Source of the DNA: Perkinsus chesapeaki ATCC PRA-425
Taxonomy: Eukaryota > Protista > Perkinsozoa
Length of the DNA: 34,093 nucleotides
Assembly: GCA_013115145.1 (NCBI GenBank)
Contig: JAAPAO010000386.1
Span: forward strand, 1-34,093
Direction of reading: 5' to 3'
Of the stretch, positions 1,659 to 31,169 are shown in pieces; the first letter of the stretch is position 1, and every line of letters begins with the position of its first letter. A program made the translations under genes and the position numbers. A model generated the notes under the pieces. It was not told the DNA's origin. It worked only from the letters and a program-made list of their open reading frames with translations, and searched no databases.

Positions 1659-1915
1659 AATGCATTTCCGTTGAATACAATAAAGCTTATCAGATAAACT
1701 GAAAAAGAGTAGTCAAGAACGGTTTTACTGTCCCTTGTTAAATGCGTGAGTGATCACCAGCTCAGGGCGATAGTATCCGAATCATAATTACAATAAATCG
1801 GCTTTTGTTTGTCCTGTCATCCAGGCTCGGCGGTCGGCGACCGCCGGTCGCGCGACCGCGGACTAGGGCGAACGAAGTGCCAATCATGGAAAATGGTTTT
1901 TCGAGCGCTGGTCGC
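1659..1915 (-). pseudogene. Truncated third copy of the tandem surface-protein gene: upstream region plus ATG CAT TGC only
   Basis: 1659-1910 aligns with 2966-3205 (aaagcttat.agataaactgaaaaagag.agtcaagaac ... agggcgaacgaa ... ttttcgagcgct). Similarity ends right after the codons for M-H-C, and the sequence below 1658 is unrelated. Confidence 0.7.
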
Positions 1916-2253
1916 AGCCGGCACATTGGCGCGGGGGACACGAACTGTGCTATTTAAAGTGTAACGCGCGGTTAAAGATACCTGTATATTCTATACCCAC
2001 TTCCTGGGACGGGTGGCCCGGGCAACCGGTTTAAGGGCAAGATTCGTTTTAGCCTGTCGAATTTCGGCTGGGCTTCTCGTGGTACAGATTCTTTACTAGA
2101 GAGAGTCCACTGAAGATTCCACGATTAAGTAATCTGTGCTGAGCGAGTCCAGCAATCGTTCAATGCAAGGAAAGACTCGGATTAAACATAGACGCGTGCC
2201 TTGCCTGGTCCGATACAGGATCGTAAAAGCAGGGAAGTAGGCTAATAATTATG

Positions 2254-2324
2254 CCTCAATAGGCCGGGTGTAAAATTTACACCCAGCCTATTGAGGGACT
2301 GAGGGATTTACACTGTAAATCCCT
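2254..2324. repeat. Two adjacent palindromes: 21-bp arms with 1 mismatch, and 11-bp arms, each with a 1-nt centre
   Basis: cctcaataggccgggtgtaaa-a-tttacacccagcctattgagg and agggatttaca-c-tgtaaatccct. Confidence 0.95.
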
Positions 2325-2429
2325 AACTCGGTAAACACTAAAATAAACTCAAGGCTGCTATAGGTTCAATGTCACTTCATTATCGGCAAATCAAATGCAA
2401 ATGTTACAACTATCAAAATCTAATTAAAT

Positions 2430-2455
2430 CTCGGCAGCCACGTGGACTTGCCGAG
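2430..2455 (-). promoter_or_regulatory. Conserved 3' UTR stem-loop (second copy at 3803-3828)
   Basis: mRNA sense CUCGGCA-A-GUC-cacgu-GGC-UGCCGAG, starting 14 nt after the stop in both paralogs. The internal difference between copies is in the loop. Confidence 0.5.
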
Positions 2456-2469
2456 GACATCCTTCGACT

Positions 2470-2973
2470 TTAATGGACGCCACCAGCAAGATGATACACC
2501 ACGACTCCTGCCCAAACAATCCAGCTTCCGGCGATAACTCCACTCTGGTTAGACCTGCTCACATCCCTCAGGTTGCCGCTTGGAGGACCAGTCGTGCTTG
2601 TCGTTGATGGCGAAAGCACTTCCTCCTCTAAGGGAATAGTCATGGACTGCAGGAACTCCATAAAAGTCGGAGTCCCTTCTGAACCGGGAGATGGTTCTAT
2701 GGTGTCAGACGAGTCGAAGCTATGCTGGAGATCTTCCCAAGCCTGTTCCATCGGTGAAGCCGTAGTAGGAGACAGAACCAATTCGCTGAGCCTGTCAGCT
2801 ATAGACTTGGTCGTCGTCGCCGGAAGGATGGCAGTAGTGTAAGGGCCGGGGGTGGTGTCATTGCTTGAAGGGTAGTCTTGAAGGTGGTCAGATAACCAGT
2901 CCATGTTCAGATCGTCGAACAATGTTGCAACAACTAGGCGGAGCATAGTTAACCAGAGCACGAAGCAATGCAT
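2470..2973 (-). CDS. Secreted S/T/P-rich (mucin-like) protein with a C-terminal hydrophobic tail, probable GPI-type surface protein, copy 1
   Basis: Intronless 167-aa ORF with an N-terminal signal-like segment (MHCFVLWLTMLRLVVA), an NDT sequon, T/S/P-rich tracts and a C-terminal WIVWAGVVVYHL. It is paralogous to 3843-4313. Confidence 0.8.
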   Translation of the reverse strand: MHCFVLWLTMLRLVVATLFDDLNMDWLSDHLQDYPSSNDTTPGPYTTAILPATTTKSIADRLSELVLSPTTASPMEQAWEDLQHSFDSSDTIEPSPGSEGTPTFMEFLQSMTIPLEEEVLSPSTTSTTGPPSGNLRDVSRSNQSGVIAGSWIVWAGVVVYHLAGGVH

Positions 2974-3127
2974 TTTGCTTGAATATGATAAAGCTTATAA
3001 GATAAACTGAAAAAGAGCAGTCAAGAACAGTTTTATTGTCCGTCATCGAATGCATGAGTGATCAAGTTCAGGGTCATACTATCCGAGTCATTATTACGAT
3101 AAAGCATTGCTCATCCTGTTATTTGAG

Positions 3128-3205
3128 GTCGGCGGTCGCGCGGTCGGGTGGTCGCGGGCCAGGGCGAACGAAATGTCAATCGTGGAAAACGGTTTTCGAG
3201 CGCTC
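3128..3205 (-). promoter_or_regulatory. Conserved GC-rich upstream block shared by all three tandem copies (1826-1910, 3128-3205, 4448-4517)
   Basis: Shared cggtcgcg..agggcga(a/g)cgaa..tggaaa..ttcgagcgc, about 135-230 nt upstream of each ATG, while flanking DNA has diverged. Confidence 0.5.
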
Positions 3206-3842
3206 TGGCGTTTCCCGTCGCAACGCTCCATGTGCGGCTGTCTGACAGCTGCTGTCGAAGTGGGGAATTGCAATGCAGGCCACCGGCCAGCGTTGCTGCT
3301 TGTTGCGGCCCACTCAGACGGTCTGGCTAAGAGAGGATCAACCTGACCGGTCGCTATCAGCGGTTTATATCTTATAGCGCTAGTTTATGTCTTGTGAAGC
3401 TTATAACGACTCGTTCTAAACTTTAACCGATGCCGATACCACTGTTGCAGTAACAGGGCTACTGTAGCACTGAAGAGCTGCTCTTCAAGAGCACATAATC
3501 AGTGATTATTGGTCATTCCTCTAATCGACAGGCCTAAGAGATCGTCTTTAGTTAGTTTCTCATCATCAGGGATTCGGGTTTCACGGGGGCGTGACGTCCC
3601 GGACGTCCATCCCAACGTGAAACCTCCAAGGTTAGCCTCGGGCTTCATCCCCCATAAAAACTAAACGGCTTGTATGTATTTTATACTATGAACTTGCGTG
3701 AGCACTAAAATAAACTCAAGAACATAACTCATATAAATCGTTTTATCCCGTCGACGAAAACTCATGGTGCAAAATGTGACAATAATCCAATCTTAATTAC
3801 TCTTCGGCAGCCTCGTGGACTTGCCGAGCACCCTCATCGACC

Positions 3843-4313
3843 TCAACGACGACCACCGTTGCCAAGGTGTACAACTGCTATTACCAACCACACCAGCCAG
3901 CTCCTCCCGACAGCTCCGGTAGCTTTAGCGTAGCTCACCCTCAAGTACCCGCTCGAAGGAGTAGTCGTACTTGTCGTTGAAGCTGATAGATCCTCTTCAG
4001 AGAGAATCGTGATTGACATCAGCTCTTCCTCAAAGGAAGGAGTCTCACTCTCCGACAAGTCCAGACGATCTTGAAGGTCCTTCCAAGCTTGCTCCATTGG
4101 GGAGGGAGTGGTTGCTGGTGATACCAATTCCGCGAGCCGTTCGGCAATAGACTTAGTAGTCGTCGCTAGCTCAGGCACTATGGTAGTCATTACGAAACCG
4201 GCAGTGGTGTCGTTGTCCAACCCGTAGCCGAAGGGCGGCTCCACCTCGATCCCGTCGAAGAATGAGCCGCCAACCACGTACACCATAGTTAGCCAAATCG
4301 CGATAGAGTACAT
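3843..4313 (-). CDS. Secreted S/T/P-rich protein with a C-terminal hydrophobic tail, copy 2
   Basis: Intronless 156-aa ORF with a signal-like N-terminus and C-terminal WLVWLVIAVVHL. It shares ATTTKSIA(D/E)RL(S/A)ELV and SPMEQAW(E/K)DLQ with copy 1. Confidence 0.8.
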   Translation of the reverse strand: MYSIAIWLTMVYVVGGSFFDGIEVEPPFGYGLDNDTTAGFVMTTIVPELATTTKSIAERLAELVSPATTPSPMEQAWKDLQDRLDLSESETPSFEEELMSITILSEEDLSASTTSTTTPSSGYLRVSYAKATGAVGRSWLVWLVIAVVHLGNGGRR

Positions 4314-5174
4314 TTAGATTTAGTCTAATGAACTGAAAACTGTACGAATAACATCCAGTGCCATCCTCAGTCACATTCAGGAAATCTAAATCCGCCGGCT
4401 CACAATAACGTCTAGTTAATGCACTAAAACGTTATTCATTTCCCAACCTCGACGGCTGCGGTCGCGGACAGGGGCGAGCGAAATATGATATCTGGAAATG
4501 GGCAAGTTTCGAGCGCCTCGGAAACACTCCTTTGGCCCCCGTCAATGAGTCTCAATGAGGGCTCATTGCAGATTAGTTAGAGCAAGCGCAATTAACGGGA
4601 GGTTCTAGCCCTGACGAGCGCTGTAGTGCCATTACAGGGGCAACCCATTGAACTGGGGCGATCTACTGAGATACAATCGGGCCCCTGCAGTAGCGGAGTA
4701 TCGAGCTCAATGAACGTTTTTTAAATTGTACATTGAGTCTAGTATTTTGTATTCGTTGAAGTCACAACGGTATCTAGGAGCAACTCCTACAGAAATGTCG
4801 CGACTCGCGAGTGATACTCGCGAATTTTATTCATATCAGTAGCTAAGATGTCGTATTACATATTGAGCATATCTGTGCAGTTTTCTATGTCTACCATCTC
4901 TAATGCTGTATAGATTATACAGTATAATACTCTCTTATTGCTCAGATACCTCCTCACTTCGCAGTGCTGCAAGTTGGATTGAAGACCCTTATTAAGGGTC
5001 CCTTGAGGGCTTTAACGTAATTGTTCTCTCCGTCTATACCAGACATACGTTTCTACTGCAAAATAGTAACCATCGAGTTGGTTAATAGCTTTACATTCGT
5101 CGAGTCGATCAGACTATGTTAGTCCGAATCGTGCTGCTCGATCGAGTAGAGCAAAAGGAGTTGAGAAGCTTAAG

Positions 5175-5285
5175 TTAAGGGGAGATGATACGAAGTTTGA
5201 TAGCTTGGATCACGTCGAACTCGATTCCATGACGAGAATGTATTGTCACGCGACAGGAAGCGATGCGCGATATGACGTGCGTGAG
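5175..5285 (-). pseudogene. C-terminal fragment paralogous to 18-103
   Basis: LTHVISRIASCRVTIHSRHGIEFDVIQAIKLRIISP*. Synonymous-biased divergence from 18-103. There is no room for a full gene before the syntaxin ATG at 5540. Confidence 0.3.
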
Positions 5286-5539
5286 AAAGAGATATGGTCT
5301 GGATTCCATATCTCTCTCTACCATGCGCTGTGTTGGAGAACAGTACTACATTGGCAAAAGCAATGTACCGCATTCGGCCCCCACTCGAATACCTCCTAGC
5401 TATTGCCTGGGAGCATATTACAGCGTTTACATAATTTTTTGACAATTAATATTTGCACAGACCGGTGTATCCTAGACACGCAATGCTTGTTGATGTGCAG
5501 CCTACTGGGCTTCACTAAGGCCCCTTATATAATGCAATA

Positions 5540-8500
5540 ATGAAAGACCATATTGACCGTCTACGCAATGAGTCACTCCGAATAAGCACAGGTTCAAATC
5601 CCGGTTATGGCAGCTTTGGTGAGTATGAGGATGTATCTAGGCCCTAGATACATCCTAGATTCTAGGGATATACTTTATCTTCAGATACTCGGAGGCCTCG
5701 ATCATCACGTTGGGCTACGGCGGAGATGGAAAACTTTCTAAGGCGAAAAGGTAACTTTGCAATTACGCCTTACGATAACCATCTATTGTCGTCCACACTG
5801 TGGAGTACTGTGCGGTTTTTTCCCATCCCAATGCTATTTCGATTTGAAATAGTCACCTCTTTTCGAAGGTTTACATATGACAAATGAGATTATGAGCTAT
5901 TTCATGCTCGCTCAATGTTCTTTGCGCAGGCTGAAGCTCTGCCTTGAAGATAGGAATACATACGAAAAAGGGATACATGAAGTCACTTTATTAAAGTGAC
6001 TTCATTACTGCGGAGTTTATATTCGCAGGGATTTTCGGTTCTCAGAAATTCGCCGTTTATTCTGAGTTACTTCAGGCGAGATTTTGTCGAGCCTCGAAGG
6101 GATCCGTAAAGAAATCGGGGCACTTGAACGATGTAGAGAGGCGCTTGCAAGCGAGACATCACGGGCTGGTGTTCAAGGTGGGTGAGGGAGTAAAAATGAT
6201 AATAATTTTCTCATTTATGAGAGTGCCATGTAAATTAGGCTTTAGAAGGAGTGTGCGACTCAGTGTCTATTGAATAGATAGTATGATACTATTAGTATCT
6301 CTGGAAACCCTCGCGGCATGTAAATCAGCTGATCGACTTGACAGTCGAAGTGCTACGATGCTGCCTACAAACGGTTCCAAGACACGTCACTTGTGAAATA
6401 ACCACTTTCGCGCAGAATGAGAAATGGTTGATAAGTGGAAGCGAACGGTTCTCGTTGGCTACTACTAAGCACATCATAGGCGTCCAGGGTAATGGTCTAT
6501 TGTTCGTAAATTACTACGAATTTCGTGGGTGGGTAAGCGCATTGCATCGAATGCCAGCAAGGGATGAATTTTACTGCAGCTTGCTGGGTTCGTTCGCACA
6601 AGTTTGCAATAGGCATACACCTTCTCGTGAGATTTACTGCTAAGTTATGTTGCCAGGTATTGTAGATGGATTCGAAGATGCTAGAGTATACATAACTAAC
6701 CAGTTACAAAGGATTAAAGTGCAGGTAGATTACTGCGTGATCGATTCAGGATTTCTGAATTCATAATAGAATACTCCATAACTTTCCTAAGAATCTATCG
6801 CTTTCTGAATCAGGAAGCTACGCTGGGCTTAGAGCGCCGATGCTGTGCGAGCATGTGTCGGACTCTTCATGCGAATGTTTTATCAGATAGAAGAAGAATC
6901 AGATGCCACGGAGGAATTCGGGCAGAAATACGGAACCCAGAGTAGCACGGATCTGCGAGCTCGACGAAGCGGCTGCCTCATGCTCTTGCATGAGATGAAG
7001 AAATTGGTGAGTGCCCCAAGATTCAGCCAAGATTACTTTGCCAAATTCTTCGTTCTGCGCACCGCTGCTGTGATGGCAGCAGGCTCCGCTGCCTTCACTA
7101 AAACTTCTAAACGGCTCACTAAAACTGCCTTCACTTAGGGACGGCAGGTTTAGGCTGCTAAGAAGTTGAAAAGTTGGAAAACTAGTTACAGTTAACAGCT
7201 ATCTAAGCTGTTATAAGTTATTAAGATAAGTCATGAAAATACTAACAGTTATAGCTTATAGCCGTTTGTATTTTTATGACGTTCCTACCTTAACGCTTAG
7301 TTGGAAAAAGTTGTTCGACTTGATCTGTTCAAGTTCAGATTGTTCAATCTGCTCCAGCCAGTGTCAGGTGTCAAATACAGTGTCCCTCTAATGTTCAGCA
7401 TTAGAGAGGCACTGTATCTGAATTAGATAATCTGGTGACGCTGGTGCATCTATTTGTCTCACTGCCTTGCCCCAGTGCGATAATCTCATATTTCTAAATG
7501 GAAGCGGCCGACTCTTTGCTTCATGTTGCTTGTGTTACAGATAGGACTGCTATATGGCGAAGTAGAAGAGTTTCGACGAGATTTGAGAATGCACTTGAAG
7601 AGCCAGTTGGCAATTGCGTTACCAAATGCAAATGATGAAGAGGTGAGCTTGCAAGCACTGGACCGATCTGCATTGCAGATTCTGCAAATATACTGCCGCT
7701 ACTGGTGTGTGTGCACTCCTCAGTATTTTAGTTTCTACTGTACTCTTTTAGCTTGAAGAGGCTCTTGATAAAGGCATTGACTTGAGGCAAGTGCTCAAAA
7801 AAAGAAGTTCCACCGGTCGCGTTATGAAACTGCAAGAATTACAAGATCAGTAAGATTCCACTTCTTGACTGTATATGACGTTCGTTATTCTCGGCACTGA
7901 GGGCTAAGCGAAATCCCGTCAGACGATTCTTACAATGTGGCTGTGTGAATGTGTACAGCAGCACGCAGATGCGTAAGGTCATTTCTCTTGCAGGCGATCG
8001 GCGGTCGTTCTTCTGGAGAAGTCAGTTGTGGAAACGCAAGAAATGATGTCCACGCTAGCCGTAGGATTCATTCTGACACCTCTAGCTGCTATTGGCTACT
8101 CTTTAGCTGCTTATAAACCATCAGGGAGGGCTTCTTGATAGTATCGAGTTTGATGTTGTGAATAGCAAATACAATGCAGGTAAGGAGGCTCTGACTGAGG
8201 CAGGCTGCCTCTATGGTGTAATAAGTCTTAAAGTTTAATAAGTTTACTCACGTGTACCTATTCGCAGCGAATTCGTGTCCATTGTGAATAATAGCTAGCA
8301 CTATCTGTCCAACTTTATCGCTAAATCCATGCTTGATAAGCTAGGGTGTTATGTCTCACGAATAGCGAGTGAACAGGTCCTCATGTGCCGTTGTTCCGTC
8401 TTCTACAGTGTGTTTACTACTCGAGGTTTCCTCCCATTGACTCGGGGATGAGGAAATATTGAATAGGAACTAATCAATTACAATCCACTTAACGTCGCAT

Positions 8501-9049: not shown

Positions 9050-12000
9050 ATGGGGAAATCGACATTGGATTTAACGCGAAACCAGCTCTTGTCGAAGTTT
9101 GGCGAATCGAAACGAGATATCATAGGTAAGCTTGGAGAAATGGCAAGGACCAGCAAGATTAACAAGATTTTTACCGGTGAGTTTGGACTTCTGCATCAGA
9201 TTCTGTGCTGAGAAGCTGCCATCGTAAACCAGTCGATTTGCAAGAATACCAAAAGGTCAGTTGAGCAGCTGGTTCGATTCGCCAGACTCGAGTGGGTTAC
9301 AATTCACATTTGTTTTACGCCGAAGGAGGGATTAATTTTGAAATGTCTCCAAGTACGTTACTTACGGTACGTATATAGGTGACCAGAGAGAATGGGGGGA
9401 TTCTGAGGGGGTTATCATTTGCGACTCAAAGGCAAATAATATCTAATATTTAATCGGAGTGAATTGCAAGCCAAGGTGCACTGTAAAGTTGAAGTGGGGG
9501 ACTTTGCTGAGAAATCTATTATTCCTTGGAAGCTGTTATCAGCTGCCATATCTTGGCCGATACATACAACAACTGGAACAAATCGCGACATGGTTCGGCG
9601 TGTAGATTCAGCGCATCGCTTCTAATCAGATTGAAGGTCTGGTTGCGAATGCGGTACGAGAAGCTCGACGAGCAAAGTCAAAAGCTGAGTCACGTCTCGA
9701 GGAGACTGTCCCTGAGAGTAGTCCTGCAATGTCCTGCTCCACCTACGCCTCTCTTTGATACAGGAAAAGCATCGATGAGATCGGATGTGAGCTCACGGAA
9801 CGACCCTAGATTGAAGCCAGTGGTCGATCTACCTAAACAGAGGCCATTCCATCTCCAACGTGCTCAAGTAGGCTGGAATTGGCTCGTTACTCCCCGTTCA
9901 ACAGTGGGCCCAATATAGTATACTTTCGTAGTAGTAGGGCACTAGTACTGCTACTAGAGTTGCTTGAGGGGCAGGCGGGCCTTCAGAATTCCGATACAAA
10001 AACGCACAGTTGAAACATTTGAGTCAGTATTCAGAACCAGGCAAAACAAAAGCAAACGCATTAGCTCTTAAATACATGGAAAGATGAACTTGCATGAATT
10101 GATTCATGAGCGTTCATTAAAATGATGGTTAATAACTTGCAATTAACAATTGAAATTAACTAGTACCATGCAACAATCACGTTCTTATGCCCTAAAACTT
10201 CGCCCGCCAACAACATCATCTCCTGGCACCTCCACGCCCCTCGGCTAAATTTAGAAATGTCGTAGCTATGCGGAGCGCTATGGTTCTGCATCGTGAACTA
10301 GGTGTTAAATACGGACTTACTTAGACTCACAGAAAGTATAGATTCAGCTCGCCAAAAATTATGAAATGGTTACATGCAGGAAATGGCGTTCGTTGTCCGT
10401 TATATCAAATAATATCTTCCAGGCGGCCAAAGCTGGTCTCGGTATTATACCTGTGGACCAATACGAGCTCATAGTTCAATACGATTCCCATATGCATAGC
10501 ATAGAAGAAAGGGAACGAATCAGGATGGAAAAGAAAAAGAAGGAAGTGGGTATCGTGCCTGTGTTACACGATGCAGAGCGCGGAGTTCTAATTGTCTGGG
10601 CTGTCAGGACTACAAGAATGCGCTTGATGCGCAGATGTCGGTGAAGCACGGCATCACGGCGAAGGAGACCGCGGCACGAGAAGGTGAAAGACTAGCTATG
10701 GTAAGTAGTATATTTCCTGGCGCGTGAGAAAGTTGGGGTTGGGTCCAGTTGGAAGCTCGAGAGCAATCGAGACGCGATGATGAGAAACGAGCGGCACTGA
10801 TGAAGCAGAAGAGGCTCGAGATGATACAGGCTGCTCAAGAGGTGTGCCAAGGGGATACGTAGCGCCTTTTTAACTATACGGCAATGTGTATATGGTGCGG
10901 GTGCAAATGTATTATTAAATATATGGTGAATAGATTGCATGCCACCTCCGATGCTGTGGAGACATTCTGTACCCAATGTGAGTATCCTGCTAGAACACCG
11001 AAGGGTGAAATGGGAACGCTCGTCACACATTGCATCATGAAGGCGTGCGGTACCGTTATGTTATCATCTATTCCTCGGCATAGAATGTTCGTCATCACGG
11101 ATATGCCGTACCATTACGATGATAGCATATGCTGCAGATGACATGCATTTCATAAGGTGCCAACAATATGTTTGTGCCTTACTCCCAAACAAGAGAGATA
11201 ATGCATCGTCCACGATTCTGGATTTCAGAAATCTGTTTACAGAATCTGGAAACTCATTTGAGTGACTTGAAATGGCTAGAGCACTCATCCGGCACAACTT
11301 GCGGCCCACAAGTGCTTTTTTCGTCGCAAGGTAAGAAAGCCACATCGCCACCCTCATAAAGCTCGAAAATAATTCTGCATTTCATGGATTCGCACCGTCA
11401 TGTAGTTGGGGGTGATCTCGCTATTAGGCTGAGCGATCGATACAGAGGAGGCAACGGCGTGAGATGGCTGAGAAAGAGGCGGAACGAAAAGAAGGATTAG
11501 AAAGGGTAAGGAAAGGGGGATTTAGCAACTCACTTTTGAAACCGTGTCTTTCAAGCGGTTTACATCTGCGAAATATATTGACTATTCGAGAAATATTGGT
11601 ATTACTATCATTGAATTCCTTAGAGAGCTTCTTATATGTCTATTACACAGTGAAATAGCTGCTGTACGAGCCGATGTGGTGCTCGGTCAACTTGGTAGGC
11701 GAGCACATTAAGCAAGCAGACTGCTTCAAACAGTGGCGGAAGAACCTCCCACCTCTATGAAAATATGCCCCTTTATGGTTCGAATTGCGAAGGAATAACT
11801 GGTTTCATTATAGAAAATACGCTTCTCGTGCTTCGCGAGTCGTGGAAAAGTAAACATGGTACCTGCTCCCACGGTTGCGGGCCCCACCAAAGCAACCCAT
11901 AGTTATTCTATGACTCCCTGTTATAAATCAGATGCAACGAGAGGCACGTGAGGCTGCAGTCGAGGAGAAGAGACGAGCTGCTGCTAACAGGAGACGTATT

Positions 12001-14175
12001 ATGGACATCAACCAGGATATTAAAGGTCGGTCTTATAACGTGGAGAGAATGGGAATTCTACTATTTCAGATGCAATTGACGCAAAACAGAAGGCGAAGAA
12101 GGAGGAAGCTGAACAAGCAGAGATCCTTATAAAACAGCAGGCAAGCGGTCGCCTTTGGTTTCCGACCTCCACACTTGGCCTGTTGGACAGTTGGCTGCGG
12201 CAGAGGCAAATGAGAAGGCCAAGATTGACGCTTTGAACAAACTGAAAGATAGGATAAAGCAAATCTCCAACACGATCGGGAAAGCTGTCGGTGACGAGAA
12301 CAAAGTAGGCTGTGCGTTGACATAAGATATTTGTACTCTTCATTTTATGTTGGATGCGACACGAAACCGACTGGCAGTCGGCGACTGCAACCTAGGCATT
12401 TTGCTTCGAAGCTTCCCATCGGCTTTGTCAGATAGGATTCGTTCGGAAAACCGAGACCTCAAGTCTATGTGTTGTGGAAAATGGATCACTTCACCGCTAT
12501 GGACTATCTAACCTCCTGTGCATCCACAATCTCCTAGTCGAATCGCTACAGAAAATATTCTCTCGATGCCGATTGAGGGGAAAATCGGCCGGAAATTCCG
12601 GTCGATGGTCCGGTCCGGTCGGTCGGGGTTTGAGGGAAATTTCACACAATTCCGGTCCGGAATTGTGTGAAATTTCCCCAACATTTTCTTTCCTAGGACC
12701 TGCACGCATTCATTGGGTGTTTTGAGCGATACTTATACATTTAGTACCAGTTGTCAGTGCAATTGCTCAGAAACGGGAAGAGGAAGAGGACCGCCGACTT
12801 GAGGCTCATTTGCGTGCAGCAGAAATTGCCTCCAGAAAAGTAAGGGCGGCCAATATGTGGCTGCGTCCCGTTTATGTTTAAAGTTTATGGCGAAAATGGC
12901 TATGTGAGCTCTCCTCCATTCAAGGCGAGAAGTGCTACGCTTATTTTTTCGGATGATCGTCGAAGATACAGAGCGTCGATCCTGGAAAGGGCTGTCCGTT
13001 TTCGAATAGTAGATTCCTGTATGTGTTAGGCCGATGCCGATAAGCGCTCAAGGCAAGAAAAGGCGAAAAAGGATATGCTAGACACGCTTGCACAACAGGT
13101 AAAATCTTCCGAGTGCGAAGCTTGGAGTTGCCTTTTAGGTTCAAGAGAAGGCGGAGCTGAGGAAGCTCGAAGCCAATAGCAATAAACTCCAAGTGAGCCG
13201 GCTAGCGAAGCTTCGCTAACATTGTGATAAATAACCGTTCATTAGAGTGGACGGTTTGCTGAGAGCTGATACATCGGCTAAGTCAATCCAGCAACCGAGT
13301 CTCGAAGTAGAATTCGTGTAGCTATGATACTAGCTTGTAGTTTGGTCATATCGATTCATTCGCTATCACAAATAGGCTGCCTATTTGATGTCATTGAAGC
13401 AACCGCAATGAGTGCCTATTATAGGCACTCATTGCGGTTGCTTCAATTATATAATATTACGCTCTGACTGATGGCCATGTGTGCTCGTTTCTCAGCGTCC
13501 TTACATTTGCTGAGCAAATTTTACTCATTAGCTTCCGTCGACGTGGTCAGGAAAGGATCCAGCCTTACGGTCAGTGTTCCCAACGCGGAAATATAACAGA
13601 ATTTTATGTGTGAAAATATGATCCTAGACCCGAAGTGCACTTCCTCTGGGAACATGTAATTGATGTATCTCAATTATTTCCTCGAGATGATATGTCATCA
13701 TTGATAGCGACTAGTGGGCTCTATGTAGGGTAAGGTGTCGAGAGAGATGGCATTGGAGGCGTTGCGAAAGGAAGCTGAGGAAGAGGAAGACAGGAAACGT
13801 ATGAGGGCAAATATGGACAAAGAGCTCGTAAAGGCGTTGTCAGCAGCGCACTCGACATGCCCTGCTCGATTCAGGAAAAGCAAATACGCTTTGTTAATTT
13901 GACTACCGAGGAAGACAGGATGGACGCCGATCTGCAACGTCGCGAGCTAGAGTTCAATCAACCTCTGTTCCGGTATTTTACTTGGTGTCTAGCCAATTAT
14001 CTTACGCTTCTGATTATCTATCAGCGCTCTATATATTAAAACTTTCAAAAGGTTTACCTCTTAGAATCTTGAATGTGCTACGCTTGGAGAGAGAGTTTGT
14101 CTATTACTGTGGTATGTCAGGCAAATGGCAAGTCGCAAGTTTAAAGAGGAAAAGACCAATAAGCTCCTATTGTAA
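9050..14175 (+). CDS. Multi-exon E/K/R-rich coiled-coil protein, similar in style to trichohyalin-plectin-homology (TPH) flagellar microtubule inner proteins
   Basis: Phase-consistent exons: 10423-10545, 10608-10700, 10749-10841, 11446-11505, 11932-12025, 12070-12140 (GC donor), 12191-12304, 12771-12839, 13030-13098, 13139-13192, 13729-13827, 13875-13972, 14121-14175 (stop). The repeated pattern is YKNALDAQ / DMLDTLAQQVQEK. The 5' exons (9050-9890) are less certain, and the family call rests on pattern only. Confidence 0.7.
12634..12678. repeat. Perfect 22-bp-arm palindrome (intronic)
   Basis: gggaaatttcacacaattccgg-t-ccggaattgtgtgaaatttccc. Confidence 0.95.
13393..13447. repeat. Perfect 27-bp-arm palindrome (intronic)
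   Basis: attgaagcaaccgcaatgagtgcctat-t-ataggcactcattgcggttgcttcaat. Confidence 0.97.
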
Positions 14176-14419: not shown

Positions 14420-15304
14420 TGGTTCTTTATCAAAATGGCGAAGCCATTGTGATGAATTTATTCCCCTCTTTTCCTGGCCAATGTCTACGAAGAAGTGATA
14501 AAGGTCAACAGTTAAGACTAGTAACTACGGACAGTCGTGGGCTCCGTTGCAGCATGCCAGCATATCCCCGGCGGACATCAAAGCCTTCTTCTGGCCCTTC
14601 GATTCCATGCACACTCTGTAGTTGAAGGCTTCGGTGACAGCAAGTGCCCAGCAGCTACCGCAGTCCGATTGGTCCCTGCAAATTGAGGCACAGCTGCGCA
14701 AGTGATCGATATTCGCCTACCTGACATGTCCAATAATATCTTTGCATTCATTGAACCCAACGCGAGCATCGAAGCTATCGGGCAAGGTCTGTAGATCGTC
14801 TCCTAAGTAGTCTTTCTGGGCAAGTGATCCTGACCTGTCTATGAAGGTACCGCACAGCCTCTTGGCGTCGCGAATGGTGAGCCCTGCAACACAATGGTGA
14901 GACTATCATGGTCAGAGTTGAGTGAGACTACCTTCAAATCTGCCCTGCTTGACAGAAGCTGTCCATCTGCTTTGTTTAGAGTTGATCTCATCAACGAGGC
15001 CCTGCAGGATTGCAGGCTTAGTCTCATCGAAAAGATCGGATATATCATCTCCTGAAATAGCCTTGGCTGGCGTTCCCAACTCCTCTGCGAAGCGGCCGAA
15101 GTGTTCAGCTTCTTCATCACTCGTATACGAATGCCCTGACCAAAAGTAGTCACGAGGGTGGTGCCCGCAAACGGCGACACCTTTGCGATGCCTGAGTTCA
15201 TCGAACATGAACTTGACAGACTTAAGTTCATCTACAACGATGCCTGACGCTAGATATAAAGAAAGGATGAGTGTCATGACGACTGTTGAAGGATAGGGGG
15301 TCAT
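14420..15304 (-). pseudogene. Cathepsin B-like (papain C1A) cysteine protease, C-terminally truncated or degenerate
   Basis: Exons 15304-14932, 14883-14721 and 14675-14529 give a signal peptide, a propeptide (LVDEINSKQSRWTAS..RFEGLTIRDAKRLCGT) and a mature N-terminus (LPDSFDAR..IGHVRDQSDCGSCWALAVTEAF..MSAGDMLACC). The next exon lacks a clean GCxGG frame. No catalytic His or NSW is found before the convergent gene end at 14175. Confidence 0.85.
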
Positions 15305-16478
15305 TGGATCCGAACGTCCGGCTTACTGTATGATATCAGTAAGAACAGTCCCAGGAATAACTTACACCCCATGGCTAACCACGGGCGCCGAAAACCCTAA
15401 CGACGTGTTGCTTGTTCCTCGTTCATATGGTCGAACACAAGGCGAGAAGGGAGTCTACAAAGGCTTCTACTTATTCAGCTTACATTCGCAGGAGGATTTA
15501 GCTGTGCGCGCATGTACAAGGGAGCGAGCGGCGCGCAATGAATAACACGAAGTTAGGCTAACGTATGCGTGCAACCGTGTAGATCACATAGCTAATGGCA
15601 AACTGTGCAACTATTTACGAAGGGCAGTGAAAAGATAACCATTCTCAGCTACCTACACTGACTAAGTTAAACTGAAATCCTAGCAGTGCTAGGCTAGCAC
15701 AGCTAATCTCAAGCTAGTGCGGTGCACTAAGTGCACATAGAGTGACATAGCCCATAATCTATTTCGTTCTGTGGCCATGTCGAGCCGCGCTTCTAAGTGA
15801 GGCGTGATATGCTACGAACTGACTCATATTTGATCAATAACTGACAGTTATTGCTGCGAGCAGTCGTTCGGCTTCCACCATCCCCACTTCGCTTGTGGCT
15901 TCAGTCGATGCGGCAAGTATCGGGGGCTGCGCTCAAGGAGACAAGCTTCAAAAGGCAAGGAGGGATATGAAGAACTTATCGTGCAGCACTACAGTATTCT
16001 GGTTCCTTTGTTGTGTTATCCTTAGGAGTTCATCAACTAATACCGCGCCACTCGCGCCTCATAGCGTAAGGCGTTTTAAGGTGAGGTGAGCGAGGTGCAC
16101 CTTATAGTCAAAATAGTAAGGTTGTGAAGGAGCCTTGCCGAAAAATTGTAAGGCGCCTTAAGGTTTTTGCACCTTGTGACGTCTAGTGAAATATGCCCCC
16201 GGACCTCCTCCAGTAATGCTTGACAGCACAGCTAATATCTCAGCTACAGGAGTATACGAGTTCATGAATACCTTCATTCATCTATGTCTAAGACATAATG
16301 TCTTCAGGTATGCAGCTACTGCGTGGCGCGTCACGCGCTCCCTGGAGCATTCCTGCGCTAAGTCAGTGTGACTTCATTGATACTTGGTTTTTCCCAAGCC
16401 TGCCTCTACCAGAATATGTCTGGGTGCCAAAGTCGGTCTCAAGGACCCGGGTGTAGTCATCGCTGTGTACTTCACTTC

Positions 16479-17657
16479 ATGCGGGTTGCTTCATTCATGT
16501 TTGGAATTTTGGGTTCAGTTAGCCTACCCGTTGGTGATGGACACTTGCTAGAACTCGACGCCGTACATGGAAATATACCTGGTTATGAAGGTCGGCCTGG
16601 CTTATATTGTCATATCAAGGATCTAGGGTTGTGGGCTGTGGTGGACACTGGCGCCCCGATATTCCACTTAATCTGGAGGGAATGGTTTGAGTCTGTCATG
16701 GGCCCCCATTCATGTGGTCTCTTACACGCTGGTTGTTATGTATGCAAGACTCCATGTGATCCTCGGCATGCCGTAACTCGTGTTGAAACTTTTTTAGATG
16801 GTACAAGCATAAATATCTTCGAGCATGAAGATGACTTGAAGATAGGGTCTGTGGACGTGGGCAAAATGAAGTTCCAGCTTACATTTGGCCAAGATCCCCC
16901 ACCTAGTGTATACCCGGTTTTCAATCTACTCGGTTTGAGACGACAACCCGAAGGCGGTTTCCCCCCGCTGCTCTACCAATTGATTGATAAGAAGCCCAAA
17001 ATGGTAAACAGCAAAACATTCGCTATTTAGCTTGATGAAAAAGCTCCTAACAGGGACTTATATTTTGGCAAGGTCCTATTGGGTGGTGGTGACCCAAACC
17101 GCTACAAGCACCCATTACTATACCTGACTTTTACAGATGCAACATATTATATGGTACCACTGAGTAGTATGCAAGTTGGTGATGGTCATCCACCTATAGG
17201 TATTTACTGGAACATATTGCTCGATAGTGGGAGCAACGCACTGGTTGTACCACCAATTCACTTTGACGCAATTATGGAAGATATCTCTGAAGCGGTTGGA
17301 CAGCCGCTTAGGTGGAATCCGGCAGCTAAGCTATGGTTAATTCCGTGTAGCTACTATAACTCAATGCCAAAGTTGATGCTTAACTTGGGCCCTAAAGGGG
17401 AGGTTCCCATCATTATGAGTAATGTTAATTATGTGCGTCCAGATAGCAAAGGCGAGAAATGCTCGATTATGATCTTAAAACGGGATATACCTTACTGGAT
17501 CCTTCCCGCTTCGGCTTTAATCGGGTATTACTTCGAGTTTCAAATAGATAATAGACGAGTGGGAATTGCTGAAACTGTTACTCAAAGTACTTCCCTCCGT
17601 CACTTCAACGGGTCGGTACTCGCCGGATCTCCGAGTGGTGCAAAGTTATCTATTTAG
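16479..17657 (+). pseudogene. Intronless pepsin-family (A1) aspartic protease with one in-frame TAG at 17028-17030
   Basis: The two supplied ORFs are in one frame: ...SKTFAI*LDEK..VLLGGGDP. There is a signal-like MRVASFMFGILGSVSL, catalytic motifs VVDTGA and LLDSGS, and a typical C-terminal YYFEFQIDNRRVGIA. Confidence 0.88.
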
Positions 17658-24500: not shown

Positions 24501-27500
24501 CTATCCGTCCTCGCAGCTACTCCTCGACGCGTAAGCGAAAGGTCTCTGGTTCGATTCCTGGCTGATGCTTTTTTCTTGATAGAATCCTCCTTGTAGACGT
24601 TGCCCTGCAGTTTCATACCCAGTTCAGTGAGAATGGCGCATTGATATCGAGCCGGAAGCGGATTGCTAGACGGTAGGCTTCGTCTGGGGTTGCTATTCTT
24701 ACTCAACGTACACGAGTGCCAATGAAAGTGGAGTCTTCGTCAAATGTTAAGCCTTCATCCTCATGCTTGTTACCGATCGATGTCATCGGTTGGAGGTTGT
24801 TATGGAATGAACAACCCGAAACCCGAATTTGAAATACTCGACAAATCATTTATCAACCGTTCCTATCGAATAAGACTTTCACGGTTTTCAGTCGGTCAAT
24901 AAGTTGTCCTCCAAAACTATAGAGGTTGACGCGTGCATTCTGTGCGACAGAAAGATTCTTATCGAGTTTACTATAGCAGGAAGCCTTTGTTCTTCACCAT
25001 TACCTGGAATTTATCATTTGTGGATCGTCGCCTGATGGCTGTCCCCGGTCGTCAGGTACTTCAAGTCCTGGCTCTGGCCAGAACTGCTGACATCCATACC
25101 GTGGGGACTGGTGGGTCTGAGTAGCTATGATGAAGACCTAACCTCATCGTGCTCAGTTCATTCCAGCATACTCTCGTGAACTGTCTGCTATCAAATTGGG
25201 AAGGACGGTATCACTGTCGAGACTGGGCAACATGAGTATGACAATTATGGCTAAGGTGGAGCATCGAGTGCAGAGCGAGATCTGGTGGATTGTACTGGGA
25301 GTCTTGAAGCTGGTATGTCAGTGTACAGCGAGCTGCCATGGCATGACAATAGAGTCTATCTCCTCCACACTTCATCCCATCACCTCACACTCGTCCTACA
25401 CCTTATTAGCATTAGTCTGGTTTAAGGGCTACTGGGCCCAAAGGTTCGGGCACGAGTTTCAACGTTGGACACAGGCAACCTCATGGAAGCGCGCATCTTT
25501 CGGAGGAAATATAAAAGCAACTTTAGTGTTATCCTGTTTATTGGGGACTTATGACTTGGAACTGTCGTGATTCTGGCAATACCGAGTATCTCTTCGATAC
25601 TCGTTAGAGTCACCTTTAGGTATCTGCGTTGTTGGTCATGTGCCATTGGGGAGCATGCTTGTGGTGGCTTATCGGCAAGGTAGGTAAAGTAACTCAGCAC
25701 TGTTGCTGCTGCTGCTGCAGCTCCTAAGACTCCATCGGCTCCTTAAGCAACGGTCTCTTTCATAACATCAACTAACCGATGTTATGAAAGGGTAGGCCAG
25801 CGCCGGATGCTATCTTCAGCTAAACCCACCATACACGCTCTTCCTCTATGAGAAATTATATCTAGTGCGTTCTGCGATGTGTTAGTTAAGTCTCCGAGAT
25901 TACGAACTGTCTTGGATAACCGAACTGGACATGGCCGATGCCTCCCAAATCCATCAGTATGTCGCTGCACTGTAAAAGAGGGAGATAAGTTAACAATTCA
26001 TATAAGTCGGTCAGATACTTTATGACCACAACGCTGACCACTGTCGGTTATGGTGACGTTACACCTGAAACCCATGTTGAACGGGTTTTCTGCATTTTTG
26101 CCGAGATTGTCGCCGGCAACGTGAGGAGCGTTGTGCCCATTGCTTGTATTGTTTTTCTTGTTTTGTGCGTGCATGCCACGTGTGCGGAAATAAGTAGAGT
26201 AATCGTTTGTAAATATACTTGTTAAATGTTAAAGATATCTGGGTAATTGCTCGAGTGTCGATTATAATTCTCGTCGATACTTCTGATCGATTCGTAAGAA
26301 TCTATCACACCCGCCTGCGGGTCTTTGTGTCACAAGGGTATAGCGCTTGAAAGACTTCCCAGCACGCGAATGGTTGCTTCCGCTGCAGTGCGTTCATATT
26401 CGTCATGAAATTTATGCCCATTCATTCTCTTCTAATTGCAGAATGGAGGTCTCAGTCTAGTGCGGCCCTGCGCACGCGAAATATAAATTCTTGACCAGCT
26501 TGCCCAATAAATTCGAAGATACCGTATAATTATTAGCATGTATTATGACCTCCCATATGAGTATCTCTGGGAGCGTTGAACCAGTAACAATGATTTCAAT
26601 CATTCCATTCCCTGCTTGTTTTTATACCACATTTCTTCCACATGATGTGGGCCACATCCCTGTAGGTATTCGCGCTTTTCTCTGGTCTTCTATGTGCTCT
26701 TATGTTGACCTATGATGAGAGTGGCGCTCAATATCGAGCGAAGTTGAAAGATGCTATGAGGTCGGTATGAGGGAATATGCACCCATTGTCGGCTTTCTCA
26801 ACAACTTGTGCGTGAGAGGCGGCAATAAGTGGTTGATAGCATTTAGAAACTGTCTTACCTAATCATATGGCTCACCATTTCTTTCGATGATCATTTAAAA
26901 ATAATGAGTTTAATGATGATGTCAGGTCAGTTCAGTTTCCAAACTATCTGAGCTAGAATAGTCATGTCAGCAGTAATGCTTCATATCCGATACTAGTGAA
27001 CTGCCCTTTGATATGGTATAATATTACTCATGATTTTTATGCTTTACAGTATTAAATAATACTTATTAATAATGTTAGTTGAACTTATAGTACACGGTTC
27101 CGCAACACGTCCTCAGCAACTAGGTTTTTTGCTCATATTGCATATTTATTCGATATTAATGTCGTATGAGTATAAAGTATATATATTTTGTGCGTATTAT
27201 TACCAATAAAGATGTTGTGTATTATTGGTAATAATACGCACAAAATATATATACTTTATACTCATACGACATTAATTAAGATGTTGTGTAATCCTATATT
27301 TTTCCTAGTATACCCCGAGTAAGAGCTATCGATTAGTGCATAGCATCTTAACCCCTCTAGATCGTCGAGTTGCTGGATAAGTTGCAGTTCGCACGCACGT
27401 CCAAAGTGAGAGTATCGCAGTTATTGATTAATTTTGATATACTTTTTATTATGTGTCGTGAGGTGTGGGAATCGGTGACCTAGGGGTTCTAATCCGTGAA

Positions 27501-30155
27501 CGGCGTCTTAGCTTGAATACATATAGACCCGCACCGAAGTGAGAAATTGTGAGCAAAGATGCTAAGAAATATTGAGAGAAATGTAGGCGAAGTGAAACTC
27601 TGTCATCTGTAAAAAATCGACTGGGAAGCGAAAGAACTACCGTGCATGACAATTCCGCAAAATGGACATTTTGTATTTTTCGAACTACATATCGCGACAA
27701 ACATACGTGGCAGTATCAAAGACCTGAACTGTTAAAAAGTAGCTTGGACTCCGTGAAAGAATCCGACGGCTATCGGATATCTGCGGTGATTGCTGTTAGA
27801 TACATGAACAAGCATAAGCTCGAGTCGGGGCTTAGGATAAGAGTCAGGAACTTCCTTCATCAGTTATTTGAGAACCAAACCAATCTCGAGGTGAATTTCG
27901 TGGCGCGGTGACGCTTGATGAGCTGGGTGGTGCTGGTTCTATGAAACCAAATCAACCCTGGGAGTCGCTCATTTTTGATTATATTTTTCTGGGGATTTAT
28001 TTCAACAAAAAAAACCTCAAAACATTTTTTCATATTTTTCCGTTCAGTCTCGGCGAGCCTTGGTGGAGTTTTTGAGAACGAGTGAGAGCCTGCAGCGTGA
28101 CGTCTATGTTGGTTTGATGGGCAAGATGCTGAAAAGATACTCCTGGTTCCGGGGCCTCACTCACGAGATTCTCGGCAAGGTAAGTTGTAGTTTCTAGAGG
28201 CATGTGAGCGTGGGAAGAATCGATATTATTAAGAATATATCTAGTATAGGCTTATCTCATAATAAGAAGACCTTCTTCCTATCATCAGATGAGATACTGT
28301 TAAAGTGTATTGTTAATTGTTCTTCTTCTTCTGAATAATAATAATAATATCCGACTGATGAGATCGGGAGCTTGCTCACTCTAGTCAGCACTTTGCGCCA
28401 AGAACGATATAACCATCATCATGATGGTTATATCGTTCTATGTTGGCAACATATGGGCCAACATATGCGCCTATGGGCAAATGCCGGCCATGATGGCATC
28501 ATGGCCGGCATTTGCCCGATGAACCGTTTACACTATGCCACCACACAGCGGTCTTGACCTGCGAGATCTCCCGCGGTGGTGGGCACAATTGTTGACTGGC
28601 TTGGAACTTGCTCAGGTGTGCTCGGTATGTGAAGATATTTATTATGCACCTATGGATGTTATGATATATGCTAAAGAGAGCGCTGATGGTATGTACTTTG
28701 TTGTTAGAGGAGCCATTGAGCTGGGGTAAGGGATATGGTTAAAGTTTGGCCACTCACAATTGATTGGTAAATCTCCATTGTAAAAACTTGACCGATATGG
28801 GCAAAGATTTCTCAATCTCGAAGTGTCCCTTCTCGCGGTACCATAGGCATTGTCATTCTTTCAGGGAATCCCCAGACGCCCAATCTGTACTCAACACCAA
28901 TGCCTCTGGAGGATCTCCTCGAAGTCAGAGAACTGGTATGTTGGCAGCCGTCAGCTGGTTAGTCACTTAACAATCAGCTAGGTTGTAGCTCGCCTCATTA
29001 GCCTTGGTTCATTGCTCGATTCACGGTACTGTCATCGTTGGTGAACAACTTAAGCTATCTACTCCTACGTTTTGAACTTAGTTGGCTTTTCTGGATCTCA
29101 GAAGTAGCAATACCACTTCAAACCGTTTTAAAGAGGTGCTTCACTGGGGTCACGTACGGTGTCTATTCTGCACCTGCGTATGGATCAATGAAGACTAATC
29201 ATCAGGAAGCCTTCTTTATTTCTCTTTGCTTTTACCAACTTTGTCTAACTCTCCTTTTGTACTAGTTTTTTATTAAAGCTTCGGCTTCTATAGTTAAGGC
29301 GATCCGTGGACTAACAGGAGTATGTTAATTTATAGCACTTTTTTCTGGTAACTCATTTCAATCGAGGACCTCTGCCATCGGGAGTCAACGCACTTTATAA
29401 CTCTTTTCTGTTATATATCTCATTTTCGACCCTGTCGCGCTGGAAGGTCTACACCATCACCCATCCCTCATTAGACACCGATGCCGGCAGTGAAGTTGAT
29501 GGGTTGATGAGACGCCAAGTGACCTTTGCCAGGATTGCTAGCACCAGTCACCTTAATACTATCAGTAAGACGGCAGGCTCTTTCCATTTGGTGGAAGATC
29601 ATTTGGATGTATTTCAAGCGAGAGCATTGCATGATCGACTTTCCGATCAGTTTTGTCATCCTTGGTAAGCATAATAACAATATAAGCTAACAGACCAGTG
29701 TTATATCTATATAACACTCTATATAACACATATATCTATATATCTATATCTATATAGAGGCACCCGCGCTATATCTCCGCCCGAGTGCGGTAAATGTGCG
29801 CACAACTACTACACTTGTTGATGAAGGGTGTAGTAGTTCTGAGAGCTTAGGATAAAACGTTTTTATTTAATAGTATATTCTGCCTCAGACCATTTGCTTG
29901 GTGCGGCTACCAGGATGTACGGTGACTTCTACACAAGCTCTGGCCCCGTAGGGTCCTCATCTGACCTGCTAGCCATAGGCAAGTTCATCTTATGTCTCAC
30001 TGCCATGATCACTTACCAGGAAACCAGAATTCTAAAGACGCTGACGCAACGTTTAGGAAGACCAATATGGGTGCTGGTTCATACTGTGGACAGATGAGCT
30101 TGTTCGCTCCATACATCTGGCCACGTACGGCGATATGCACCTGCTTCTGTGAGGT
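21518..30155 (+). CDS. 6-TM potassium channel with C-linker and cyclic-nucleotide-binding domain (KCNH/HCN/CNG-superfamily architecture); 3' end unresolved
   Basis: Exons: S1 24355-24437 (WDMIVAAALVYVILGIPFEAAF); S2 24487-24530 and 24583-24672; S3 from 25056 (YFKSWLWPELLTSIPW); S4-S5 linker to about 25312; S5 25620-25679 (CHWGACLWW); 25886-25971 and 26015-26120 (QYVAALYFMTTTLTTVGYGDV); 26666-26760; 27800-27890; 28048-28179; CNBD 28616-28725 (GMYFVVRGAIEL), 28865-28935, 29475-29664 and 30057-30155 (GSYCGQMSLF..PRTA). Long low-complexity N-terminal exons lie at 21518-23760. Confidence 0.9.
23426..23484 (+). repeat. Single unit of a 58-bp repeat also found in tandem at 34004-34093
   Basis: tttgataggaaatatgttactagtgatacggag.aggagatataatagaaaggagtttg is nearly identical at both loci. 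Confidence 0.9.
24523..24574 (+). other. tRNA 3'-half-like sequence forming most of a 52-nt intron
   Basis: cgtaa-gcgaa-aggtc-tctgg-ttcgatt-cctgg-ctgatgc-tttttt resembles anticodon loop, variable loop, T-arm and a T-run. There is no 5' half, so it is not a functional tRNA. Confidence 0.35.
27155..27290. repeat. 55-bp perfect inverted duplication whose 12-nt spacer is directly repeated after the right arm
   Basis: Arms 27155-27209 and 27222-27276. The spacer agatgttgtgta (27210-27221) recurs at 27279-27290. Confidence 0.97.
28401..28517. repeat. Cluster of palindromes: 19-bp, 6-bp and 21-bp arms, each with a 1-nt centre (intronic)
   Basis: agaacgatataaccatcat-c-atgatggttatatcgttct; atgttg-g-caacat; gggcaaatgccggccatgatg-g-catcatggccggcatttgccc. 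Confidence 0.97.
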
Positions 30156-30689
30156 GTAAGTTGGTAGCATTCATCATAGCCTTACAAGTCGATTAACGGT
30201 TATGGCAAAAAATGAACTGGTTGTTAGATGATAGACAGTGCTTGCAAGGCTTTTGTGCTGTGGTCTAGGTTGGGTGAGACGCTTCGGGAATCCGGAGGAC
30301 AGTAGCAGAAAATTAGAGTCAAATTCATTCAAATATTGTGAGGCGCCAATGGTGTGCATTGAGCCTAATTGCGCGTCTCCCTCTGAAGGAGAATACTGCA
30401 ATCACCGCCGCATTACGGGGCCTCTCTAATCTAATGGTATGTCATCAAATCAGTTACCATATAGACACGGCGAGATTCAAAGAGAAGATGTATGAGTCAG
30501 AAGATTCAAAGTAGGTTGATTGGCATACCATCTATTGAGTGGCCTCATTAGAACTTTGTATAACGAGAAGGCTCTTTGTGTGGCAGCGAGAGAGGGTCTA
30601 GTGAGTATAGTAAGTCCGGGCGGAATATATAATGAAACCGAATACGCTTAGCAACTCTACTACATATGACTGTATGTTAAATTTAAAGG

Positions 30690-31060
30690 CTTTAACTATA
30701 TTGTTATACTCCTTCCACTGTTCCTTTAACTATATTGGTATACTCCTTCCACTGTTCCTTTAACTATATTGGTATACTCCTTTCACTGTTCCTTTAACTA
30801 TATTGGTATACTCCTTTCCCNNNNNNNNNNNNNNNNNNNNNNNNNNNNNNNNNNNNNNNNNNNNNNNNNNNNNNNNNNNNNNNNNNNNNNNNNNNNNNNN
30901 NNNNNNNNNNNNNNNNAGTTCCTTTAACTATATTGGTATACTCCCTTTCACTGTTCCTTTAACTATATTGGTATACTCCTTTCCCTGTTCCTTTAACTAT
31001 ATTGGTATACTCCCTTTCACTGTTCCTTTAACTATATTGGTATACTCCTTTCCCTGTTCC
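30690..31060. repeat. 34-35 bp minisatellite interrupted by a 96-N assembly gap (30821-30916)
   Basis: Unit ctttaactatattggtatactcc(c)tt(t/c)(c)(a/c)ctgttc, with about 4 copies on each side of the gap. Confidence 0.95.
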
Positions 31061-31145
31061 CTCAGTCATAGAGTAATATGGGATATTCCCTAACACTTTC
31101 TAGTCAAGTCTACACTACACCTTCGAATTGGGGAAACTCTTCGAT

Positions 31146-31169
31146 CTCGCAGGAATATATTCCTGCGAG
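31146..31169. repeat. Perfect 24-bp palindrome with no spacer
   Basis: ctcgcaggaata|tattcctgcgag. Confidence 0.95.

Follow-up and report, generated by a model that had tools for sequence, protein, structure and literature searches.

In the Hermes reaction the first nick falls one nucleotide (nt) into the flanking DNA, whose end is afterwards closed into a hairpin. Experimental donor sites of Hermes and of the other hAT transposons Ac/Ds and Tam3, in plants, yeasts and insects, retain remnants of the 8-base-pair (bp) target duplication, as do the palindromes described here. Ac/Ds footprints are, in addition, palindromic insertions that have the complement of the element-adjacent base at their centre, with arms of up to 20 nt in yeast (PMC5873905). 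Palindromes are numerous in the window analysed here, which is the complete 34,093-bp contig JAAPAO010000386.1 of assembly GCA_013115145.1 of the oyster parasite Perkinsus chesapeaki. A first-pass annotation of the window had attributed their excess to a possible fold-back mutational system; the present analysis indicates, with a probability of roughly 85%, that they are donor-site repair scars of cut-and-paste hAT-type transposons with an 8-bp duplication, and not the output of a new mutational system.

Palindrome counts were compared with a null model of 100 dinucleotide-preserving shuffles of the window. Perfect palindromes with a 1-nt centre and arms of at least 7 nt numbered 35, against 2.3 in the shuffled controls (maximum 8), with corresponding figures of 11 against 0.16 for arms of at least 9 nt and 6 against 0 for arms of at least 12 nt, the last six having arms of 12–27 nt. 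All of the palindromes listed previously were present, including the short ones with arms of 7–11 nt: the arms at 5628 (14 nt), 5977 (14 nt), 12634 (22 nt), 13393 (27 nt), 28401 (19 nt) and 28475 (21 nt) are perfect around a centre of 1 nt, the palindrome at 31146 (12 nt) is present without a centre base, and that at 2254 has 21-nt arms with the one mismatch claimed for it. The excess claimed for centres of 0–1 nt is thus real, but the claim treated both classes alike and did not separate odd from centre-less palindromes. The excess is confined to the odd palindromes, those with a 1-nt centre, and has a preferred size, 7 nt being by far the most frequent arm length (23 of 41 palindromes), which argues against a loose fold-back process; centre-less palindromes show a weaker excess (6 against 2.2 for arms of at least 7 nt, 3 against 0.13 for arms of at least 9 nt). 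The arms have no common sequence, the longest shared string being at most 7 nt and every arm being found in its own palindrome only. A family of MITEs (miniature inverted-repeat transposable elements) or foldback elements was rejected on these grounds and on the single-copy read depth over 28401–28517, in agreement with the first-pass view that the palindromes are not one MITE family.

Most of the cases with 7-nt arms are two palindromes that share 7 nt, giving a single 22-nt string composed of positions 1–7 of an 8-nt unit, the reverse complement of the whole unit (positions 1–8), and positions 2–8. This string was generalised to a unit of length k, and the window was scanned for k = 4–12 and compared with shuffles. 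Only k = 8 was enriched, with 7 exact matches, 14 with at most one mismatch and 18 with at most two (0, 0 and 0.1 in the shuffles, respectively); there was no excess at k = 4–7 or 9–12 in the window, and no match at all at k = 7 or 9–12. A form lacking the offset (a unit, its reverse complement and the unit again) gave no matches with units of 6–12 nt. Scars with 0, 1, 2 and 3 mismatches number 7, 7, 4 and 11 in the window, indicating decay by mismatch, and the decayed copies exceed expectation (11 against 1.4 with 3 mismatches, 33 against 11.5 with 4, and 117 against 67 with 5), some of these being shifted registers of known scars. The scars are given below in window coordinates, with no strand assigned here or in the later lists; L001 denotes contig JAAPAO010001339.1, a 3,955-bp contig of the same assembly that is a diverged copy of window 2318–5311 at 82–85% identity, either a second haplotype or a duplicate.

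1830–1851: exact 22-nt scar with target GCGGTCGC, within an overlapping palindrome chain at 1828–1858 (unit scan)
3236–3257: decayed 22-nt scar with two mismatches (unit scan); the surrounding region differs from L001
3472–3509: exact 22-nt scar with target GAAGAGCA and, after it, a 7+1+7 palindrome; L001 shares the two
3586–3607: 22-nt scar with one mismatch and target GGGACGTC; window-specific, L001 being 14 nt shorter with a single 8-mer
4907–4928: 22-nt scar with one mismatch, common to L001
4985–5006: 22-nt scar with one mismatch, common to L001, with uncompensated changes there
6278–6299: exact 22-nt scar with target ATAGTATC (unit scan)
7666–7687: exact 22-nt scar with target ATCTGCAA (unit scan), within the range of a gene of 645 amino acids
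8190–8211: decayed 22-nt scar with two mismatches (unit scan)
11713–11734: decayed 22-nt scar with two mismatches (unit scan)
12367–12388: exact 22-nt scar with target CCGACTGC (unit scan)
13505–13526: 22-nt scar with one mismatch (unit scan)
15679–15736: exact 22-nt scar at 15679–15700 with target CCTAGCAC, and a second scar at 15715–15736 with one mismatch (unit scan)
16283–16304: exact 22-nt scar with target TATGTCTT (unit scan), shortly upstream of an aspartyl-protease frame
26637–26658: 22-nt scar with one mismatch (unit scan)

The longer palindromes obey the same geometry. In a pair test, odd palindromes no more than 200 nt apart were taken together, and the left arm plus the complemented centre of the first was compared with the complemented centre plus the right arm of the second. 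The outer strings of 11 window pairs overlap by exactly 8 nt, with no overlaps of 7 or of 9–14 nt, and a control in which the centres were left uncomplemented gave no overlaps in the window. The centre base always complements the duplicated base that lies outermost, and neighbouring palindromes rebuild one shared 8-bp target duplication. The earlier suggestion of a single break marked at its two ends by paired palindromes is borne out by four long pairs (2254 with 2302, 5628 with a small partner, 13369 with 13393, and 28401 with 28475), each of which rebuilds one 8-bp duplication; the statement that no target-duplication architecture could be seen did not hold, the duplication being embedded within the palindromes.

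2254–2324: twin footprint with target GTGTAAAT; left arms of 21 nt (one mismatch), 5-nt filler, right arms of 11 nt
5628–5667: twin footprint with target ATCTAGGG; 14-nt arms and a partner with 6-nt arms, joined through a 3-nt CCT overlap (5654)
13369–13447: twin footprint with target AATAGGCA; 9-nt arms, 5-nt filler (13388), 27-nt arms
28401–28517: twin footprint with target CCATCATG; 19-nt arms, 35-nt filler of repeated CAACATA-type pieces, 21-nt arms
5977–6005: solo palindrome, arms of 14 nt around a 1-nt centre, its partner not recognisable
12634–12678: solo palindrome, arms of 22 nt around a 1-nt centre, without a clean partner; a 10-nt copy of the centre lies just upstream
31146–31169: centre-less palindrome with 12-nt arms, outside the 1-nt-offset model

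An 8-mer on both sides of a scar points to an insertion with an 8-bp staggered cut and a later departure, and a unit fixed at 8 nt, when lengths of 7 or 9–12 nt give no scars, calls for a staggered cut made by a transposase. Remnants of the 8-bp target duplication flank the scars on both sides in the unit scan and in the pair test alike, as in hAT footprints, and the overlaps appear only with complemented centres, in keeping with the rule published for hAT (PMC5873905, PMC1978519). Hairpin sealing with off-centre opening, as in a hAT-type excision footprint, was among the processes named by the first-pass annotation and is supported by these tests. Its main idea had been a route of repair or replication, independent of transposons, in which fold-back or a template switch produces inverted copies of neighbouring DNA, and one separate event in the window does have the form of a template switch.

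27155–27290: template-switch-type inverted copy with 55-nt arms, its 12-nt spacer repeated right after the second arm

The 55-nt arms had been correctly described, but the spacer is 12 nt and not a centre of 0–1 nt; read contigs of 72–84 nt cross the centre. The filler at 28440–28474 also appears templated. A variable spacer with no fixed unit, the mark of template switching, was found only at 27155–27290, the remainder having the fixed 8-nt unit, and copying by fold-back gives no reason for a length of exactly 8 nt, for the complement of the terminal base or for the presence of both duplication copies. The fixed geometry contradicts such a cause for most of the palindromes and leaves it very unlikely as the general explanation.

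The excision reading predicts an uninterrupted site where no element has been, and the comparison with L001 supplies such sites. At the twin footprint 2254–2324, L001 lacks exactly 45 nt (2269–2313) and runs through an unbroken site whose length is as predicted; at the scar 3586–3607, it lacks exactly 14 nt (3587–3600) and has one 8-mer instead. Reverse cases, in which L001 carries scars, some of them exact, where the window has a single 8-mer, were also present: the single 8-mer CAGGCCAC near window 3277, beside the decayed scar at 3236–3257, corresponds to an exact scar in L001, and further scars found in L001 only lie near window 4387, 4604, 4631 and 5102. The scars at 3472, 4907 and 4985 are common to both copies and have since acquired point changes. 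The palindromes are insertions of predicted size that differ in age and are derived relative to the empty site, as follows from the exact gains of 45 and 14 nt, the reverse cases and the shared scars with point changes. The scar at 1830–1851 has an extra inverted copy that is absent from the paralogous upstream copies at window 2958–3225 and in L001. Of the 16 insertions or deletions of at least 5 nt in the 3-kb comparison, at least 7 are due to scars and 2 more contain palindromes. At window 3349–3434, L001 has a 9-mer, its inverse and the 9-mer again with single bases between them, a string that misfits the 8-nt scar and may stem from two successive events.

The same comparison bears on the suggestion that the palindromes are hairpins under selection, as intronic double-stranded RNA or precursors of small RNA. 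In the palindrome at 3495, which the window shares with L001, one pair of changes between the two is compensated, as such selection would have it, set against four uncompensated changes in the shared scars. The arms have no common sequence and no Rfam match, the scars decay by mismatch, and some are present in one copy and missing from the other; the mismatch decay and the ratio of uncompensated to compensated changes leave selection on intronic hairpins unsupported and highly improbable.

Contigs built independently from the reads of four public runs (two samples, two studies), possibly from the same strain as the assembly, span 27247–30742 with no differences and cover the palindromes at 28401 and 28475. 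The raw-read check proposed earlier was favourable for 27000–32500, the interval to which it was confined, the palindromes of which are present in read-derived contigs without differences. Read contigs fray at 27889 and 27913, and one joint skips 27912–29074. In one sample (S1), three linked base variants at 28648–28681 occur at about half depth, which suggests heterozygosity or a second copy, and a contig of this sample matches the window rightwards from 28431, in the right arm of the 28401 palindrome, and differs upstream over more than 255 nt; the diverging part could be another allele or the source of the filler.

Scars are also a feature of other Perkinsus loci. In a locus of 21 kb from P. 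marinus ATCC 50983, whose assembly is older and separate, 14 scars are exact and 19 have at most one mismatch; a P. olseni locus, likewise of 21 kb, contains 23 of the latter class, and another, 15.6-kb contig of P. chesapeaki has 9; none were found in a 17-kb control locus of the chytrid Chytriomyces hyalinus. Exact scars amount to 41 in 92 kb from the three Perkinsus species, against 0 expected, and scars with at most one mismatch occur at densities of about 0.4–1.1 per kb. The pair test outside the window likewise gave 8-nt overlaps only (17 pairs in P. marinus, 15 in P. olseni and 6 in the other P. chesapeaki contig), with no overlaps in the chytrid locus. Fold-back artefacts of assembly or amplification are scarcely conceivable given these results: the possible origin of the read sets from the assembly's own strain leaves some room for them and no positive support for them was found, while the palindromes of 27000–32500 recur in k-mer contigs of all four runs, scars recur in the separate assemblies of P. 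marinus and P. olseni, and shared as well as copy-specific scars bear point substitutions.

The attribution to hAT-type enzymes goes a step beyond the geometry, and one element still in place in the window bears upon it.

31399–31600: non-autonomous element of 186 bp with flanking 8-bp duplication AATCACAG and ends CAGTGT...ACACTG (11 of 14 positions in inverted match)

Read depth over this element is about 15-fold and contigs fray at both of its ends, which marks it as a member of a multi-copy family, and it provides one case of an element with short inverted ends and an 8-bp duplication in the genome. A search for resident elements with duplications of 7, 8 or 9 bp gave this one real match in the window, the matches in P. 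marinus being microsatellite noise, and no copies of the 186-bp element or of high-depth segments were present in the other loci compared. Several observations weigh against hAT. None of the ten large reading frames of the window encodes a hAT transposase (the Pfam scan gave an aspartyl protease only), with the rest of the genome not searched; the 20 inferred targets yield no hAT-like target-site consensus; the classical short (16-nt) footprint of the Ac type shows no enrichment across the 92 kb from Perkinsus (4 against 1.8), and its variants were not enriched or were uninformative; no partner can be recognised for two of the long palindromes (5977 and 12634); and the centre-less class (arms of at least 9 nt, 3 against 0.13), a small excess to which the palindromes at 8762, 13203 and 32036 also belong, does not fit the 1-nt offset.

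The scars might be the work of another superfamily with flank hairpins or 8-bp duplications, such as Mutator-like, Zisupton, Novosib or Merlin elements. No transposase has been identified for the scars here, and the room that geometry alone leaves for superfamilies with 8-bp duplications and an unknown excision chemistry also weighs against hAT; the Mutator-like element Muta1 leaves flank hairpins and makes duplications of 8–10 bp (PMC5499845). Its hairpin of 43+43 nt (PMC5499845) suggests, however, that there is no offset, whereas the 1-nt offset is documented for hAT and the no-offset form is absent here. Duplications of Mutator-like elements are mostly 9–10 bp, compared with strictly 8 bp and no scars at 9–10 nt in the window, and the resident element has short CAG...CTG ends rather than the long inverted ends typical of that superfamily. 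Another superfamily is consequently regarded as an unlikely source, and a hAT-type transposase as the probable one.

For excision by such a transposase, the nicking and hairpin, opening, annealing and fill-in steps are inferred to run as follows. Insertion of the element would duplicate 8 bp of target (N1–8). At excision the transposase would nick each flank one base in, and the 3'-OH of the flank would attack the opposite strand, giving a hairpin on each flank whose tip would be the complement of the outermost duplicated base. Host nucleases would then open the hairpins well away from the tip, leaving ends that carry inverted copies of the flank. With both tails at least 8 nt long, the complementary 8-nt copies of the duplication could anneal, and trimming and filling would give a 22-nt product with a net gain of 14 nt; this product would be the same whatever the points of opening, which would explain the stereotyped scar. 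Alternatively, fill-in of the tails might be followed by a join, made either directly or by way of some other short overlap (CCT at 5654) or filler (5 nt at 2297 and at 13388, 35 nt at 28440), resulting in paired long palindromes with 1-nt centres. The short classical footprint is not enriched while 22-nt scars abound, so the opening of hairpins in the Perkinsus lineage seems to take place far from the tip. What is peculiar to the lineage may therefore be the repair outcome, namely long palindromic tracts and one stereotyped 22-nt product. The unusual repair route proposed in the first pass may thus hold for the resolution of hairpins, but it acts on breaks made by transposons and is not transposon-independent.

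The claimed restriction of the palindromes to introns and intergenic DNA is plausible, though weakly tested. There are none in the annotated single-exon gene at 2470–2946, in the gene at 3797–4313 or in the protease frames at 16368–17657, while stop-free frames of at least 100 codons contain 3 of the 19 palindrome loci, against 6.8 expected (P = 0.05, a comparison of low power made without an exon map). A location outside exons is plausible because a gain of 14 nt shifts the reading frame.

The window has a G+C content of 45% and a single run of N (96 N, 30821–30916), which lies in a repeat array.

30690–31060: minisatellite of 34/35-bp units with an assembly gap; the repeat unit is identical on the two sides of the gap (30690–30816 and 30918–31060)

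Read contigs end at 30734–30742 and restart at 31022–31041, none bridging the gap, across which continuity and copy number are unproven. The depth of the minisatellite at the gap is about 35 times the local level, so that the array is longer than assembled or has further copies elsewhere. The gap stretch is non-coding repeat on which no palindrome relies, and the palindrome closest to it (31146) lies in a read contig at 31041–31588 with no differences.

The genes at 2470–2946 and 3797–4313 (minus strand) are small Perkinsus-specific genes in tandem that encode proteins of 158 and 151 amino acids with a signal-like start, a Ser/Thr-rich middle and a hydrophobic end, with no Pfam domain recorded; a second pair of this type, 82% identical, is present on L001. 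The aspartyl-protease reading frames at 16368–17657 (plus strand) were recognised in a Pfam scan of the window frames (Asp, E = 3e-15), and the adjacent frame at 14525–15304 (minus strand) has by eye the look of a papain-type cysteine protease, judging from a catalytic-cysteine motif. Several diverged copies of the aspartyl-protease gene exist on other P. chesapeaki contigs (L003, L006 and L008), of which L003 and L008 align with the window over the protease gene only and offer no additional before-and-after sites. A protein search with a protease piece of 192 amino acids gave no match within the range of lengths covered. Rfam and tRNA scans of the window gave no matches. The P. marinus locus L004 contains CTA/TAG microsatellites at 3325–3452 and 15949–16115 whose orientation flips inside the array, and in the P. 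olseni locus L005 two retroelement genes with reverse transcriptase and integrase domains (1795–4572 and 14732–17353) are interleaved with aspartyl-protease genes.

Cut-and-paste excision usually leaves little that is recognisable, and past activity is counted from the remaining elements only; the Perkinsus scars can be counted, polarised against empty sites and dated through their decay. If the broader proposition stated at the end of this paragraph is true, they would form a countable and datable fossil record of excisions across the genus, and each visit by a transposon would add at least 14 nt, so that introns and spacers would grow. The share of scars among the insertions and deletions of the 3-kb comparison suggests that transposon traffic is a major supplier of new non-coding DNA in this parasite. 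The broader proposition, that most mid-size non-coding insertions in Perkinsus are excision scars from a lineage-specific resolution of hairpins (opened at least 8 nt from the tip and annealed through inverted copies of the duplication), is offered tentatively and given somewhat less than an even chance.

Compared with systems already described, the palindromes resemble MITEs and foldback elements in being short inverted repeats in non-coding DNA, but they are single-copy, without common sequence and made of local flanking DNA. Four-point template-switch inverted duplications are matched by the 27155 event in its spacer and repeated return point, and leave the 8-nt scars unexplained. The long tracts of P-nucleotides (palindromic nucleotides) at V(D)J coding joints arise in a similar way, from a hairpin-sealed flank opened off-centre to give an inverted copy of the flank; RAG and Transib hairpins, however, have no 1-nt offset and accompany a 5-bp duplication, compared with 8 bp and a single complemented centre base in Perkinsus. 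The closest likeness is to hAT footprints, which have P-nucleotide insertions centred on the complement of the element-adjacent base and joins through short overlaps (PMC5873905, PMC1978519). No description of such scars or of hAT elements in Perkinsus was found in the literature searched. The excision mechanism itself is known; the apparent novelty lies in the abundance across the genus, in a single predominant product that carries the full inverted duplication, and in the very long tracts. In contrast to experimental hAT footprints, the Perkinsus scars are natural, fixed and abundant, and their arms reach 27 nt, compared with at most 20 nt in yeast (PMC5873905). Where hAT footprints in plants and yeasts are concerned, the Perkinsus scars differ in being dominated by the single 22-nt product with its full inverted duplication, without enrichment of the short footprint, and this predominance, together with tracts of up to 27 nt, suggests a resolution of hairpins unlike that in plants, yeasts and vertebrates.

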